A stretch of 63,719 nt of DNA, filler included, from Octopus bimaculoides (GCF_001194135.2; 4 parts of 4 records of this genome joined end to end with filler, not necessarily neighbours in it), one strand, 5' to 3'; shown: positions 40,130 to 60,337, counted from the whole stretch's first letter. Notes: generated from the sequence alone by a model not told the origin. Program-made: numbers and translations.

Positions 40130-40249
40130 TGCAGCCGATCTCATCACTTGCATCTCCGCAGTCATCATGACCATCGCATTTCTTTGTTATTGGTATACAG
40201 TTACCAGACATACTACATGTGAACTCGCGGGCGTTACATCTCTCGGTAG
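40130..40249 (-). CDS. SSPO: SCO-spondin-like exon: LDLa repeat 4 ([39 protein letters not shown])
   Basis: Six-Cys LDLa with DCxDxSDE; acceptor tttctcacag| and donor A|gtaagt; 120 nt, phase 1 to 1. Confidence 0.94.
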
Positions 40250-42253
40250 CTGTGAGAAAGTAGAGAAAACGTATATAACATACTATCAGACTGCGGTGAA
40301 ACACGTTTATATTATATTATATTATATTATATTATATTATATTATATTATATTATATTATATTATATCATATTATATTATACTATATTACATTATATNNN
40401 NNNNNNNNNNNNNNNNNNNNNNNNNNNNNNNNNNNNNNNNNNNNNNNNNNGTGTGTGTGTGTATAAATTATATATGGACATATACACAAGATCATAGATA
40501 TGCAATCATACACAAGAGTATGATTATACAGCATGAACAAACACACACGTACACAAACATGCATGCACGCACGAACACACATGCACGCACGCACGCACGC
40601 ACATACACACGCATGCACACTCACACACACACACACACACATGCACACTCACACAAACACACATACCTGCACGCACACATACATACACATACATATACAC
40701 AATCACACACAGGTATATGTTTCTTTAATCTTTTTTTTTTGGCTGGATGTTTTGCAAATAGATTGAAATATTTCTGTAGTCGACGAATTATATATATTTA
40801 TATATATAATTATATATGTTTTTATATATTCATATATATTTCTGCAGTCGATGAATTATTAGTGCTGTATTTTCTAGTTGTTAGTAACTGTGTTAGTATG
40901 GCACTCACTGCTAGTTTAAAATTGGAATGCAACATAAACATATTGAATCATGAAAGTTTGAGAAGTCCTGGTACCAGATCAGCTCGTGTAGTGAAATGAT
41001 TTGTACTCTTCTGTCTGACGGAATTCACGAAAAAGCTTTCTAAACACCACCAACACATTCGGTTGCCAAAAGTATAAACAAAGCTAGTTGCTTTTTAACT
41101 ACCGAAGGTCCGGATGCATTTGCTTGACGTGACACAACATATCTAAACATCGGTTTTCCATAATCTCTTGCACGAATGCGCCAAGAGTGTCATGAACACA
41201 CGGTCGTCGTAAAAAGTTACTCTATGGCGTACGTTACAACGACCGGCATATTATGCACCCGAACCTTTCCGGACATATTAAGAATAAACATGTAAATAAT
41301 CGTTTGAGGTTTTGTTAAACACAGCGCAAATAATGTTTTCCTTTTTACCAACAGACTTAACAGAGTTGATATCTTTTTGAGCATGAGTTCTGTATTGCTT
41401 ACGACAAAGACTTGTGCCATTTTTGCAGATGATAGTCCCATACATTTATAAAACAATGGTGAATCTTGCAGTATGCAAAATGTCAAATGCAAGACGAAAT
41501 TAGAAATAATATTTCATCACTCAATATATCATAATGCATAATATAAATTAATTTTGCTTGGTGCAAATATCTACAAGATAAGTAGTTGCTGCCTGTATAT
41601 CAAAAGATATTTTGGAAAATACAATATTTTATTTATGTAGCTATCCTTTTCACTAAGATTGTGTGATAGCATTTGTATTCTGAGCACTAGCGCTCGCGGT
41701 GGCCTATCCGTGCACACACACGCACACACACACACACACACACACACACGTGTGTATGTATGTATGTACTTAAAGCATAATGCATTTGAATAGCCAAGAC
41801 ATAAGTTCTGATGAGTATGGAAATAACGTCTTTGGCCAAATCTTGTTCCCGTAATCTCTTGTTGCTGTCTGGTTTTGTCGGCTCCTTCTGTAAGAAGGGT
41901 GTCAAGCTATGTTATTATAGATTCTTCTCTTGCACAAGAGCAGAGGTGTGAAGAAGCGATAGTTGAACACATTCTGATTTTATACGACTTATTTTTATTA
42001 TATTTTAAACAGCAAAATAACAGGTTTTAAAGTGGACCAAACACGGGTTCATTAGATGAAATATAATTCAATACGTACGTTTGTGCATGTATGTACGTGT
42101 GTTTGTATGTATGTTTGAGCATACATATACACTATCCAGTGTGTATATGTGTGTGTGTGTGCATGGATATGTGCGCGTATAAATATGGACGTGTGTGTGT
42201 GTGTGTGTGTGTGTGTGTGTGTGTGTGTATCATAAGTGACTTGGCATACTCAC

Positions 42254-42373
42254 GGCAACTGGTTTCGTCTGAATTGTCATCAATACCACAATCCACATGA
42301 CCATCACACTTGAAAGATTTCGGAATGCATTTCTTATTTTTGCAGGTAAACTGGGTGTTGTGGCATGTTACGT
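42254..42373 (-). CDS. SSPO: SCO-spondin-like exon: LDLa repeat 3 ([39 protein letters not shown])
   Basis: Six-Cys LDLa with SDE; acceptor ttcttcatag| and donor C|gtgagt; 120 nt, phase 1 to 1. Confidence 0.94.
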
Positions 42374-43300
42374 CTATGAAGAAATAAAATAATATGAAAA
42401 TAAATAACAATGAAGAGGGTGGGCGGGGCAGGAAACTCGATATTATTGGTGTAGTCCTTAATGACAGTTATGATGATGCTGATGATGACGACGACGACGA
42501 CGACGACGACGACGACGACGATGATGATGATCGTTAACGACGACGATAATAATGATAATGACCACCACGATAACGATGACAACAGTGATGATAATGAGTT
42601 TTTTTAATGATAATGAATGATAAGGACGAGTTATTTCTCTTGTGCTTAAGCAGAAGTGTAAAAAAGCGGCAGTTGAGCACATTCTGGTTTTCACCCACGA
42701 TTTTTCGTTGTTTGGAATTCATGTAGCATTTTTGTCTCTGTATCAACTATTATATACTTTTCGTAACCCCACCGAATCAGATGTAAAGTATCAACCATTT
42801 TCGCAATTTTATTGAGCAGATCAAACCGGTCTATTATGACACACATTATAAGTTTACGCGAGGACTAAATGATCAACCAGTTGCATAAATGATCGTAAGT
42901 CCGTAGATTGGATCCATAGATCGGGTGACAATTTGTTGTGCTTAAACGAGGTACTTTATTTCACGTTGCCGCTCTCCATTCAACTGAAAATAATTTGCTG
43001 CAACGCTGGATGTAACAACTATACCGGCCATATACACTGTATGTCCCTTAATATAATGTTTGTTTGTTTTGTGTGGTTGCTCTACCTTAGGCCTGCCTGC
43101 ATGAAACAGAAACTATGAACAAAAACGTTTCAGTCATATCATCCATCTTTTATAATTTTATAAAATATCAAGTGCTATGTTCATTGGTTTTAAAGACGAT
43201 GCAGTTGATTTCAGGCCGCTACTTCTAACAGTCAGAAATCATGTTTATTCCTTTTATATCATCTCAAAAAAAAAAAAGCAACACTTCGATGGATACTTAC

Positions 43301-43414
43301 TGCAGTTTGTTTCATCACTACCAAGCACACAATCTGGTAGACCATTACATTTTTTAGATAGAGGGATACAGTTTCCATCACCGCACTCAAATTCTCCAGG
43401 TTTACAGGTATAGT
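43301..43414 (-). CDS. SSPO: SCO-spondin-like exon: LDLa repeat 2 ([37 protein letters not shown])
   Basis: Six-Cys LDLa with SDE; acceptor ttctgttgcag| and donor A|gtaagt; 114 nt, phase 1 to 1. Confidence 0.93.
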
Positions 43415-43639
43415 CTGCAACAGAAAACAAATATAAAAAAAGACACCGAATACAGCAAAAGTATCTTCATCAGTAACATAATTTGCAGCAGCAACAGAAG
43501 CTGTGATATTTCTCGGGAAGTGGTTTGATTTGATATTTATCATGTGTTGACACTAAGAGATTTGCATCATGCTAAAAGCATTTTAGCCATTAGAAAATAC
43601 AAGCTCACATGTTTATTATATAATTATTTAAGAGTTTCA

Positions 43640-43855
43640 ATAGAGAGATTTAGAAGTGCGTAAGATTGTGGTTTCGATTCCTGGACCGGGCGACGCGTTG
43701 TGTTCTTGAGCAAAACAATTCATTTTACGTTGCTCCAGTTCATTCAGCTGGCAAAAATGAGTAATCCTGAAAAGGACCGGCGTTCCGTCTAGGTGGGGGA
43801 TATATACGCCACGAAACCAGAAACCGGCCCTAATGAGTCGGTATAACTCGAGAAG
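43640..43855 (+). mobile_element. SINE family C copy
   Basis: B-box gtttcgattcc + tgtgttcttgagcaaaac..ttttacgttgctccagttcattcagctgg. Other copies at about 54717-54960 (+), 59890-60172 (-), with heads at about 20590-20650 and 23540-23610. Confidence 0.8.
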
Positions 43856-58560: not shown

Positions 58561-59345
58561 TTATTATTATTATTATTATTATTATTATTATTATTATTAT
58601 TATTATTATTATTATTCCTTTCGTTTTATCAGCATTTCCTCAACATCGCTAGCTATCAAACTGCTATTGTATCGCTTCATCCAACGACGAACTATATTTT
58701 GTTTCTTTGGGATAAATGTCGGTTGACAGTCTTCACTTAGAGCTCCTATGTGGTCGATCAACATTTTAGGAATAACAGCTATATTACTTCATGCTACTGT
58801 TTAAGAGAAGGGCGCGTTGGGTCAAGTGGTTCTCGCTACCCTCTGCACGTTAGGAAAAAAAACTAGGTGATCATGGATAGAATGCCTTTGTTCATTGATT
58901 GGAACGATCAGGGTTCTCTTAGGGTTAAATCGCAATAACAAAAACAAACTACATTTGTGAATTATTCACCAAAGGATAGTAGATGGCTGAATCGCTAAAA
59001 CGTCGGACAAAATGCTAGTTTGTATTGAACTACATCCCTTTATGTTCATTTCTTGCCGGGGTCAAAACTGAGATTTATTTTTTCCGTGTCGAAAAATAGG
59101 CACCATTCAAATAATTACTGGAGTCGATTGAAGTTACTATACTTTCCTTTAAAAATGCTAGAACACCTTTCGTGCGAACAGTTAACCATTCAATGGAGGA
59201 ACTCTTTCATCAACTGAGTCTCCATCCCATTCCGGATCGTTCCATTCTCATTTGAACTCCCTATTCGTTCAAGAAATCAGATGTTTAAAATATCCAAGAC
59301 AGAAAGATAAACATTTCTTTTTTTTTATTAAATTTTATATATTAC

Positions 59346-59395
59346 CTGCGCAGTCAGATTTCGAAACTGTCACCCAAACATTCTTCCTGCAAATT
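59346..59395 (-). CDS. SSPO: SCO-spondin-like exon: ICRKNVWVTVSKSDCA(A)
   Basis: Acceptor tttatttttcag| and donor G|gtaat; 50 nt, phase 2 to 1. Joins both flanking exons in frame and gives the CxxTC entry into the VWD domain. Confidence 0.82.
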
Positions 59396-59592
59396 CTGAA
59401 AAATAAAATGGAAAACGTTAAATAATTTCTAACAAACTCTTTTTCGACTGGATATGTATGAAATTTCTTTTGTTGAATGTGTTTCTATATACATACATAC
59501 ATACATACACGCACACACACACACACACACACACACACACACACACACACACNNNNNNNNNNAATAATAATAATAATAAAAATAATAATAAT

Positions 59593-59806
59593 GGTTTCAA
59601 ATTTTGCCACAAAGGCAACAATTTTTGGGGATGGGACAAGTCGTTTACATCGACTCCAGTGTTTCAGTGGTACTTAATTTATCGACCCCGAAAGGATGAA
59701 AGGCAAAGTCGACCTCGGTGGAATTTGAACTCAGAACGTAGCGGCAGACGAAATACCGCAAAGCATTATGCACGGCATGCTAACAATTCTGCAAGCTCGT
59801 CGCCTT
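59593..59806 (-). mobile_element. SINE family B copy
   Basis: Reverse complement of the family B head and body (ccccgaaaggatgaaaggcaaagtcgacctcgg...gaatttgaactcagaacg). Confidence 0.87.
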
Positions 59807-60245
59807 AATGAGGTCAAACAAGGAGCAATGTCATTGCAAAACGAGCCTCTTATGTACACAGCCATCCTTTATATACTGACTGAAAAACGTTTCACTTGAT
59901 CCGATCAGCCTGCTCGTGAAGTTAACGTGCAAGTCGCTGAGTACTCCACTGACACGTATACCCTTAAGATAATTTTCAGAGAGATATAACGTGATGCAGA
60001 ATATGAGAAGGCTGGCTCTTTGAAATATGGGTACTACTCATTTTTGTCAGCTGAGTGAACTGGAGCAAGGTGAAATAAAGTGTCTTGCCCAAGGATACAA
60101 CATACCACTATGAATCGAACTCACGATCTTATGAACGTGAGTTGAAAACCATAACTACTAAGCCATGTGCCTTTGACTGAAAAATAAAGATGGCGAAATA
60201 GCCAGTGTACTGACATCTCAACAAAATATAAAAAAAGTCACTTAC

Positions 60246-60337
60246 AATTCTTTGCATCCAATTTTAATTTTGTGTCCTGGCTTATACCATTTATTGTCAT
60301 ATCTACAAGGGCATTCATCTTTTTCTACACATCTACC
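60246..60337 (-). CDS. SSPO: SCO-spondin-like exon (first seen in window): TIL end + E/VWC-like module, GRCVEKDECPCRYDNKWYKPGHKIKIGCKE(L)
   Basis: Acceptor gaaacag| and donor TT|gtaagt; 92 nt, phase 0 to 2. Aligns with the paralogous exon 47016-47109 (KKCVPAIECPCYMNGLRYSPGTKLNMNCKE). Confidence 0.88.

Follow-up and report, generated by a model that had tools for sequence, protein, structure and literature searches.

This analysis concerns a SCO-spondin-like gene of Octopus bimaculoides (GCF_001194135.2) that lies in a window of 63,719 nucleotides (nt), by which we mean the whole stretch of DNA at its full length, filler included. We analyzed the piece from 39857 to 61171 (21,315 nt, 36% G+C), in which the gene runs on the minus strand and is open past both ends. 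Its 12 exons encode 565 amino acids (aa), and these match residues 958-1522 of a deposited protein letter for letter (UniParc UPI00071D6281, 1596 aa, labeled P0132), found by exhaustive search with exon 3 alone. The deposited protein shares a 90% cluster with XP_036361565.1, “SCO-spondin-like [Octopus sinensis]” (1891 aa, P0270), and with XP_052826934.1, “LOC106877466 [Octopus bimaculoides]”. The latter is the current RefSeq annotation, a 283-aa fragment with the same N-terminus as UPI00071D6281. We show that the piece covers 20 kb from the interior of the O. bimaculoides “SCO-spondin-like” gene, whose N-terminus is annotated as LOC106877466 and which is the ortholog of XP_036361565.1. A first-pass annotation, made without knowledge of the origin of the DNA, had already called the gene molluscan; the spliced product is identical to a protein of the O. 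bimaculoides lineage, and the piece has interspersed repeats in common with the O. bimaculoides contig LGKD02089635.1, so the DNA is of O. bimaculoides origin.

Twelve exons form a single reading frame

The exons splice into one uninterrupted frame. Starting from minus-strand, Cys-rich, stop-to-stop blocks with VWD-, C8-, TIL-, and LDLa-like peptides in descending coordinates, we set splice sites by AG/GT (or GC), phase continuity, and conserved Cys spacing. The resulting 12 exons, from 60337 down to 40130, comprise 1696 nt and 565 codons, contain no stop, and have phases that fit at all junctions. Ten of the 11 introns between them are GT-AG and intron 8 is GC-AG, with a pyrimidine tract and AG at every acceptor. 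This independent rebuild gives the same ends (60337 and 40130) and the same length as the first-pass annotation, which had described 12 phase-compatible exons in one frame of about 565 aa; that observation is confirmed as accurate to the base. The annotation had also remarked that several exons are invisible in the open reading frame (ORF) track. Exons 1 and 2 indeed have no counterpart in the list of ATG-initiated ORFs, exon 2 being only 50 nt long.

The model agrees with the deposited sequences. A tblastn search of the piece with the deposited protein gave 12 blocks at exactly the modeled exon coordinates and nothing more, and the O. sinensis ortholog is 91.9% identical to the product over all 565 residues with no gaps. 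Given an intact frame of 565 codons together with this gap-free conservation (~92%), we reject a pseudogene or artefact.

Exon 1 (acceptor ...aaacag/GGT, donor TT/gtaagt, slashes marking exon borders) corresponds to residues 958-988 of the deposited protein. Exon 2 was located by a phase-constrained search and identified via an octopus paralog (P0007) that reads ...GCKEL/KCRNATWIDTDVGDCP; ...GCKEL/KCRNATWIDTDVGDCPATC, and tblastn of deposited-protein residues 989-1005 matches it. A regular-expression search between exons 1 and 3 for the canonical CxC...C tail of the E module had returned translations of microsatellites only; the true exon 2 lacks CxC. The 342-nt length of exon 3 is also found in the octopus paralog. 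At the exon 8/9 junction (TG/gcaagt ... ttttag/T, acceptor at 46205), a Cys codon and the E-module pattern C-x-x-C-x-C are restored, and the junction is identical in the deposited protein.

Two other donors were considered and dropped. For exon 4, a weak donor at 53433 (gttcca) was rejected because homologs keep the second Cys; a perfect donor (AAT/gtaagc) lies 42 nt further on and sets the exon end at 53391. For exon 8, a GT donor in phase 0 (CAA/gtattc) was rejected because its phase clashes with the only good acceptor, whereas the GC donor two codons upstream fits. At the homologous position and in the same phase, a paralog on contig LGKD02089635.1 (~24815) has an ordinary GT donor, TG/gtaatg, where this gene has GC.

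Table 1. Exons of the SCO-spondin-like gene and runs of N in the analyzed piece, in window coordinates.
Feature	Position	Strand	Length (nt)	Content and support
Exon 1	60246..60337	(-)	92	Phase 0 to 2; start of the E module closing the preceding TIL/E unit (GRCVEKDECPCRYDNKWYKPGHKIKIGCKE)
Exon 2	59346..59395	(-)	50	Micro-exon; tail of the same E module as exon 1 (L-ICRKNVWVTVSKSDC-A)
Exon 3	55689..56030	(-)	342	First two-thirds of VWD3, including the GDPH motif; Pfam VWD and tblastn
Exon 4	53391..53599	(-)	209	End of VWD3 and start of C8-3; 100% tblastn match to deposited residues 1119-1188
Exon 5	52179..52312	(-)	134	Middle of C8-3; Pfam C8
Exon 6	50529..50638	(-)	110	End of C8-3 with C-x-C-x5-C-x-C-x-C motif and WRSQELC
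Exon 7	48032..48181	(-)	150	TIL3 without the VWF/mucin C1142 hairpin insertion; Pfam TIL and motif comparison
Exon 8	47016..47109	(-)	94	First half of E3; then GC-AG intron, donor GC at 47015-47014
Exon 9	46045..46205	(-)	161	Second half of E3 and LDLa repeat 1; Pfam Ldl_recept_a
Exon 10	43301..43414	(-)	114	Phase 1-1; LDLa repeat 2
Exon 11	42254..42373	(-)	120	Phase 1-1; LDLa repeat 3
Exon 12	40130..40249	(-)	120	Phase 1-1; LDLa repeat 4; gene goes on past the piece
N run	59553-59562			Intron 1
N run	56914-57077			Intron 2
N run	50789-51083			Intron 5
N run	40398-40450			Intron 11

A third D assembly is followed directly by LDLa repeats

The encoded product has the layout of a D3 assembly that runs into LDLa repeats. 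Exons 3-12 gave Pfam matches to VWD (9e-37), C8 (8e-15), TIL (4e-12), and four copies of Ldl_recept_a (2e-38). The order is an E module, the last before D3, then a complete VWD3-C8-3-TIL3-E3, and finally LDLa repeats 1-4, the four present in the window; the LDLa run begins 3 residues past E3, and its repeats bear the acidic SDE calcium-binding motif. The reading of the domain order as D3 followed by LDLa is borne out by the full protein, in which the window VWD is the third (1007-1154 of UPI00071D6281) and the LDLa repeats come directly after it.

The full octopus proteins (UPI00071D6281 and XP_036361565.1) have three VWD, three C8, four TIL, and six to seven LDLa domains by Pfam. Past the window, two more LDLa repeats occur in UPI00071D6281 and three more in the O. 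sinensis ortholog. From its N-terminus, the whole protein consists of a signal peptide, a CC-x-GW-x-G-x-x-C/EGF module, three D assemblies, six to seven LDLa repeats, and a Thr/Ala-rich mucin-like stretch. In O. sinensis, this stretch (56% S/T/P) follows the LDLa run and leads into a terminal 91-aa stub with a faint F5_F8_type_C match (E = 0.053, profile positions 5-54 of 127). The closest non-cephalopod relative, LOC128227575 of the clam Mya arenaria (3056 aa, P0194), has the same N-terminal layout, three LDLa repeats, and ~1400 aa of tandem repeats of Pro/Thr/Ser (PTS) type.

The module before D1 (CCSGWSGVKC plus EGF, outside the window) aligns with the N-termini of SCO-spondin-like proteins from amphioxus (E 1e-15) and a crinoid (E 3e-11), and VWF and MUC5AC lack it. 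Pfam gave no TSP_1 match in UPI00071D6281, XP_036361565.1, or the clam protein; an amphioxus SCO-spondin-like protein (P0275) has TSP_1. CysD and VWC were not detected by Pfam in the full octopus proteins. Neither the O. sinensis nor the clam model has a CTCK or Cys-rich C-terminus, a region that lies outside the window and at which the models may be 3′-truncated. The O. sinensis gene spans ~110 kb on a 110-Mb scaffold, and no Pfam hit is recorded for the annotated gene that comes next, 10 kb downstream. Compared with O. sinensis, the older 1596-aa O. bimaculoides model is missing ~57 aa of the D2 VWD; it ends after LDLa repeat 6.

The Cys pattern separates two kinds of D3 assembly

The D3 assembly of the octopus protein shares one of the two intermolecular Cys sites of VWF. 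It contains 33 Cys, an odd count, and its C8-3 has the motif CxCx5CxCxC with spacing identical to VWF C1089/C1091/C1097/C1099/C1101. In VWF, C1097 and C1099 are alternative partners of C1091, and freed C1097 forms a disulfide between D3 and D3′; C1142 provides the second such disulfide, and either bond alone is enough for dimerization (PMC8847404). The TIL3 hairpin with the extra Cys equivalent to VWF C1142 is missing in mollusc D3s and in every SCO-spondin D3 that we compared. Gel-forming mucins and VWF have both intermolecular Cys as well as a CTCK, whereas in the octopus protein the C8-3 switch is present and the hairpin Cys and CTCK were not found.

Known structures of the VWF and MUC2 D3 (6N29, 7PMV, 6RBF, and 6TM2) fall, like the octopus D3, in the VWD-C8-TIL-E fold family (E 1e-57 to 1e-147) and have the same spacing of the C8-3 Cys switch. 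They differ from the octopus protein in the TIL3 hairpin Cys C1142, which it lacks, and in what follows D3, which is VWA or PTS/CysD and not LDLa. In VWF, the better match to the window D assembly is D2 (197 bits), ahead of D3 (180 bits).

The WRSQELC segment had been described in the first-pass annotation as a close match to SCO-spondin. It does closely resemble bird SSPO but is found equally in the D3 of MUC2, the D3 of VWF, and a tick hemocytin-like protein, and so has no specificity for SCO-spondin. The WRSQELC/CxC motif thus marks D3-type assemblies generally rather than SCO-spondin.

VWD3 also contains a GDPH motif (~56000, exon 3; peptide AAGDPHYQTLDG), as does the D3 of vertebrate SCO-spondin. 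In FCGBP and some mucins, GDPH is reported as an autocatalytic Asp-Pro cleavage site (PMC8267560).

The octopus protein groups with SCO-spondin

Similarity searches place the product nearest to proteins of SCO-spondin type. A word-indexed search returned, among the matches listed (up to 881 aa), SCO-spondin-like proteins of Asterias, Ciona, Branchiostoma, shark, birds, and O. bimaculoides at 37-46% identity. The best single local alignments over D3 and the LDLa repeats, at the same protein position (~residue 960-1020), had 40-44% identity and were to the 3056-aa clam protein, crinoid and amphioxus SCO-spondin-like proteins, sturgeon SCO-spondin, and a 5588-aa teleost protein. Across this region, the sturgeon and teleost proteins of SCO-spondin type are 40-41% identical to octopus. 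MUC5AC, MUC5B, and a mucin-2-like protein aligned at 34-37% identity over the D assembly only, with scores about half those of the SCO-spondin-type relatives. The presence of LDL_recept_a has been described as a feature that distinguishes SCO-spondin (Lang 2016, PMC4948705).

Phylogenetic trees place the window D assembly both by position and by family. A neighbor-joining tree of 86 individual D assemblies puts it in the clade that unites all third D assemblies (71% bootstrap), within which the mollusc D3s form a subclade (74-92%). We also built a neighbor-joining tree from concatenated D1+D2+D3 (909 columns, 500 bootstraps), a set that included no complete arthropod hemolectin. This tree is divided by a split with 100% bootstrap. 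On the SCO-spondin side are octopus, Argonauta, clam, Antedon (a crinoid), amphioxus, teleost, and sturgeon; on the other are VWF, MUC5AC, MUC5B-like, amphioxus mucin-2-like, and 3+2-VWD proteins of Diadema and amphioxus. The last two sit with a tick hemocytin-like fragment in the per-domain tree (56-57% bootstrap). The peptide therefore groups with SSPO and not with mucins or hemolectin, the placements that the first-pass annotation had named as contrary to its view. Two discrete characters, the shared pre-D1 module and the absent TIL3 hairpin, agree with the concatenated tree.

That annotation had proposed a mollusc ortholog of SCO-spondin. Family affinity and domain position support the proposal; it does not hold beyond the N-terminal third of SCO-spondin. 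Judged by its sequence, the octopus protein has its homology to chordate SCO-spondin in the N-terminal third only.

Paralogs occur in octopods

The O. bimaculoides contig LGKD02089635.1 carries a paralog whose exons are arranged in the same way. One further paralog at least, and possibly a second, occurs in octopods (P0007/P0008 on LGKD02089635.1; P0016; Argonauta hians P0252), with a D3 of 44-50% identity and an identical exon layout. In the per-domain tree, P0016 joins the Argonauta protein at 100% and may be of that type rather than a separate paralog. The P0016 model has an apparent insertion or read-through within its C8.

Assembly gaps are intronic

All four N runs (Table 1) are intronic, and no reading frame is carried over any gap. 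No exon of this segment is hidden in the gaps, because the O. sinensis ortholog aligns over 565 aa without gaps and tblastn adds no block. Three of the four, those in introns 1, 5, and 11, adjoin simple repeats of (CA)n, (TA)n, or (AAT)n, a probable cause of the assembly breaks. The introns are rich in (CA)n tracts throughout.

Larger repeats were also observed. At the edge of the piece, 60942-61048 and 61065-61171 form a perfect 107-nt direct repeat (100%, 123-nt spacing), possibly a tandem duplication or an assembly artefact. Intron 9 contains a 119-nt inverted repeat (44554-44672 and 44831-44949; 91% complementary, 158 nt between the arms) that looks like a hairpin or a miniature inverted-repeat transposable element and has mirrored short ORFs, MFNVATTCSTSNINAI... 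on the plus strand and MFNVTTTCSTGNINAI... on the minus strand. Intron 6 has a 91-nt inverted repeat (49726-49816 and 50071-50161; 96% complementary) around an (ATT/ATC)n microsatellite, and mirrored poly-Ile ORFs on both strands result from this arrangement. An interspersed repeat of ~270 bp occurs at 54236-54501, 53672-53905, and 48417-48636 / 59588-59807, with at least five copies (83-87% identity) in LGKD02089635.1. It is probably a short interspersed nuclear element (SINE); ARAGORN detected no tRNA-like SINE heads on the piece. Four intronic ORF remnants with the look of transposable-element debris, at 51232-51739 (-), 57314-57487 (-), 58294-58524 (-), and 44601-44842 (+), had no Pfam hit at E <= 0.1.

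Discussion

The architecture of the octopus protein is known from another mollusc. The limpet protein P-vulgata_3 likewise has three vWFD domains, C8, TIL, several LDLrA, and no TSP1 or CTCK, and it is from this architecture only that we infer orthology. P-vulgata_3 is a protein of 1604 aa (vWFD x3, C8, TIL, LDLrA x5) whose homology to SCO-spondin is limited to the first third and in which TSP1, SCOR, and CTCK are missing; it occurs in the pedal adhesive mucus of the limpet, and in situ hybridization places it in the pedal sole (Kang 2020, PMC7333891). The limpet protein is thus backed by proteomics and in situ hybridization, whereas the octopus gene is known here from sequence alone. The same authors weighed re-purposing against an ancestral adhesive function (PMC7333891). 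SCO-spondin-like peptides have also been reported from the skin-mucus proteome of O. vulgaris, with the paralog not specified (PMC10138644). Invertebrate “mucin-like” VWD proteins were found to be closest to SCO-spondin (Lang 2016, PMC4948705), and an annelid SCO-spondin has been cloned, the transcript of which occurs in radial-glia-like cells (Helm 2017, PMC5543218).

Vertebrate SSPO (e.g., chick Q2PC93) shares with the octopus protein three N-terminal VWD-C8-TIL assemblies followed by an LDLa cluster, as well as a D3 without the C1142 hairpin. The two differ beyond this region: SSPO has ~27 thrombospondin repeats (TSRs), 12 TIL, 7 VWC, FA58C, EGF, and CTCK (PMC8487547), whereas the octopus and clam models carry a PTS tail instead and are without the TSRs and cystine knot by which SCO-spondin is defined. 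SSPO is a product of the subcommissural organ or radial glia and builds Reissner's fiber.

The best explanation is probably that the piece is an internal segment of an octopus SCO-spondin-like gene, homologous to the N-terminal third of SCO-spondin, that encodes a secreted glycoprotein of mucus or adhesive type. The protein would be an extracellular glycoprotein in which D1-D2 serve as a template on which D3 assemblies pair head to head, as they do in VWF and MUC2. The extra Cys of the C8-3 CxCxC switch (equivalent to VWF C1091/C1097/C1099) would then form one intermolecular disulfide; a single D3-D3′ bond is predicted because the Cys count is odd (33) and there is no equivalent of C1142. The calcium-binding LDLa repeats would bind ligands, and the PTS tail, with its predicted O-glycosylation, would provide hydration. 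Overall, this picture suggests that the protein is a component of mucus or adhesive matrix, as limpet P-vulgata_3 is, rather than a Reissner-fiber protein. The first-pass annotation had proposed “another secreted-polymer role” for it; this seems a reasonable idea and one that is already published.

Several points weigh against this explanation. A D3-only tree does not place the mollusc D3 as sister to the SCO-spondin D3 (relative to mucin/VWF/hemocytin D3, bootstrap 16-19%), and the Pfam model of EMI, an N-terminal domain of SCO-spondin, gave no match even at E <= 10, the pre-D1 module included. The models have no CTCK, so tail-to-tail dimers and long linear polymers like those of VWF and mucins are not predicted; at most, there would be D3-linked dimers or other cross-links. 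The peptides from octopus mucus (PMC10138644) are not assigned to this paralog. Furthermore, TSRs and CTCK are judged to be absent from models that may be 3′-truncated, as the O. sinensis model ends in an FA58C-like stub and UPI00071D6281 ends after LDLa 6.

The possible truncation bears directly on one alternative, that the segment belongs to the N-terminal end of a full-length, functional SCO-spondin ortholog, secreted by glia-like cells of the nervous system as reported for an annelid, with the TSR array and cystine knot encoded further 3′ and missing from the models. The grouping with SCO-spondins and the shared pre-D1 module would fit such a protein, as would the annelid transcript in radial-glia-like cells (PMC5543218). 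The octopus models are fragmentary (283 aa for RefSeq LOC106877466 versus 1596 aa in the older model), and the one from O. sinensis ends abruptly in a possible FA58C-like stub; in vertebrate SCO-spondin, an FA58C domain comes after the LDLa cluster (PMC8487547). However, three independent mollusc models (octopus, 1891 aa; clam, 3056 aa; limpet, 1604 aa) lack TSP1 and CTCK, two of the three run into PTS repeats, and the gene 10 kb downstream in O. sinensis adds no Pfam hit. We consider a complete SCO-spondin unlikely.

A clotting or immune protein of the hemolymph, of hemolectin or hemocytin type, is very improbable. The tick hemocytin-like protein has the same D3-type C8 motif, also lacks the C1142 hairpin, and appears among the matches at 36% identity, and Kang 2020 names hemolectin/hemocytin among the BLAST relatives of the limpet homolog (PMC7333891). 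Proteins of this type, however, have 3+2 VWD with F5/8-C between the groups (PMC4948705), whereas the octopus protein has three VWD and then LDLa, with neither the 3+2 arrangement nor paired F5/8-C domains. Hemolectin is not described with LDLa after D3, and the 3+2-VWD proteins that the hemocytin-like fragment joins are split from the mollusc and SCO-spondin proteins at 100%. It is just as hard to credit a conventional gel-forming mucin of MUC2/MUC5 type with a superficial likeness to SCO-spondin, which is mainly a question of naming. A PTS region does follow the LDLa run in the O. sinensis ortholog and the clam, mucin D3s are significant matches, and Lang 2016 classes such invertebrate proteins as “mucin-like” (PMC4948705). 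Against this, the mucin/VWF clade is separated at 100% bootstrap; the octopus protein lacks the TIL3 hairpin Cys, with no CysD, VWC, or CTCK detected, and has LDLa repeats and a pre-D1 module, both of which are missing in mucins.

The gene is real, correctly read, and already known in sequence, name, and biological idea. It carries little weight as a discovery: the product is deposited and named, protostome relatives of SCO-spondin have been reported since 2016-2017, and the idea that a truncated SCO-spondin-like protein serves molluscs as a secreted polymer of adhesive or mucus dates from a 2020 paper. The practical gain is twofold. The junction-by-junction model, including the 50-nt micro-exon and the GC-AG intron, covers a gene for which the current RefSeq annotation has only 283 aa. 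In addition, the comparison provides discrete characters that tell a SCO-spondin-type D3 protein from a mucin/VWF one: the CxCxC switch present, the C1142 hairpin absent, and the pre-D1 module present.

More tentatively, the octopod family of at least two to three paralogs (this gene, the P0007/P0008/Argonauta type, and possibly P0016) may consist of SCO-spondin derivatives without TSRs that have turned into polymers of mucus or adhesive particular to the lineage, for example, those of skin or suckers. It is conceivable, if doubtful, that the mollusc form, and not the chordate giant, reflects the ancestral bilaterian function.

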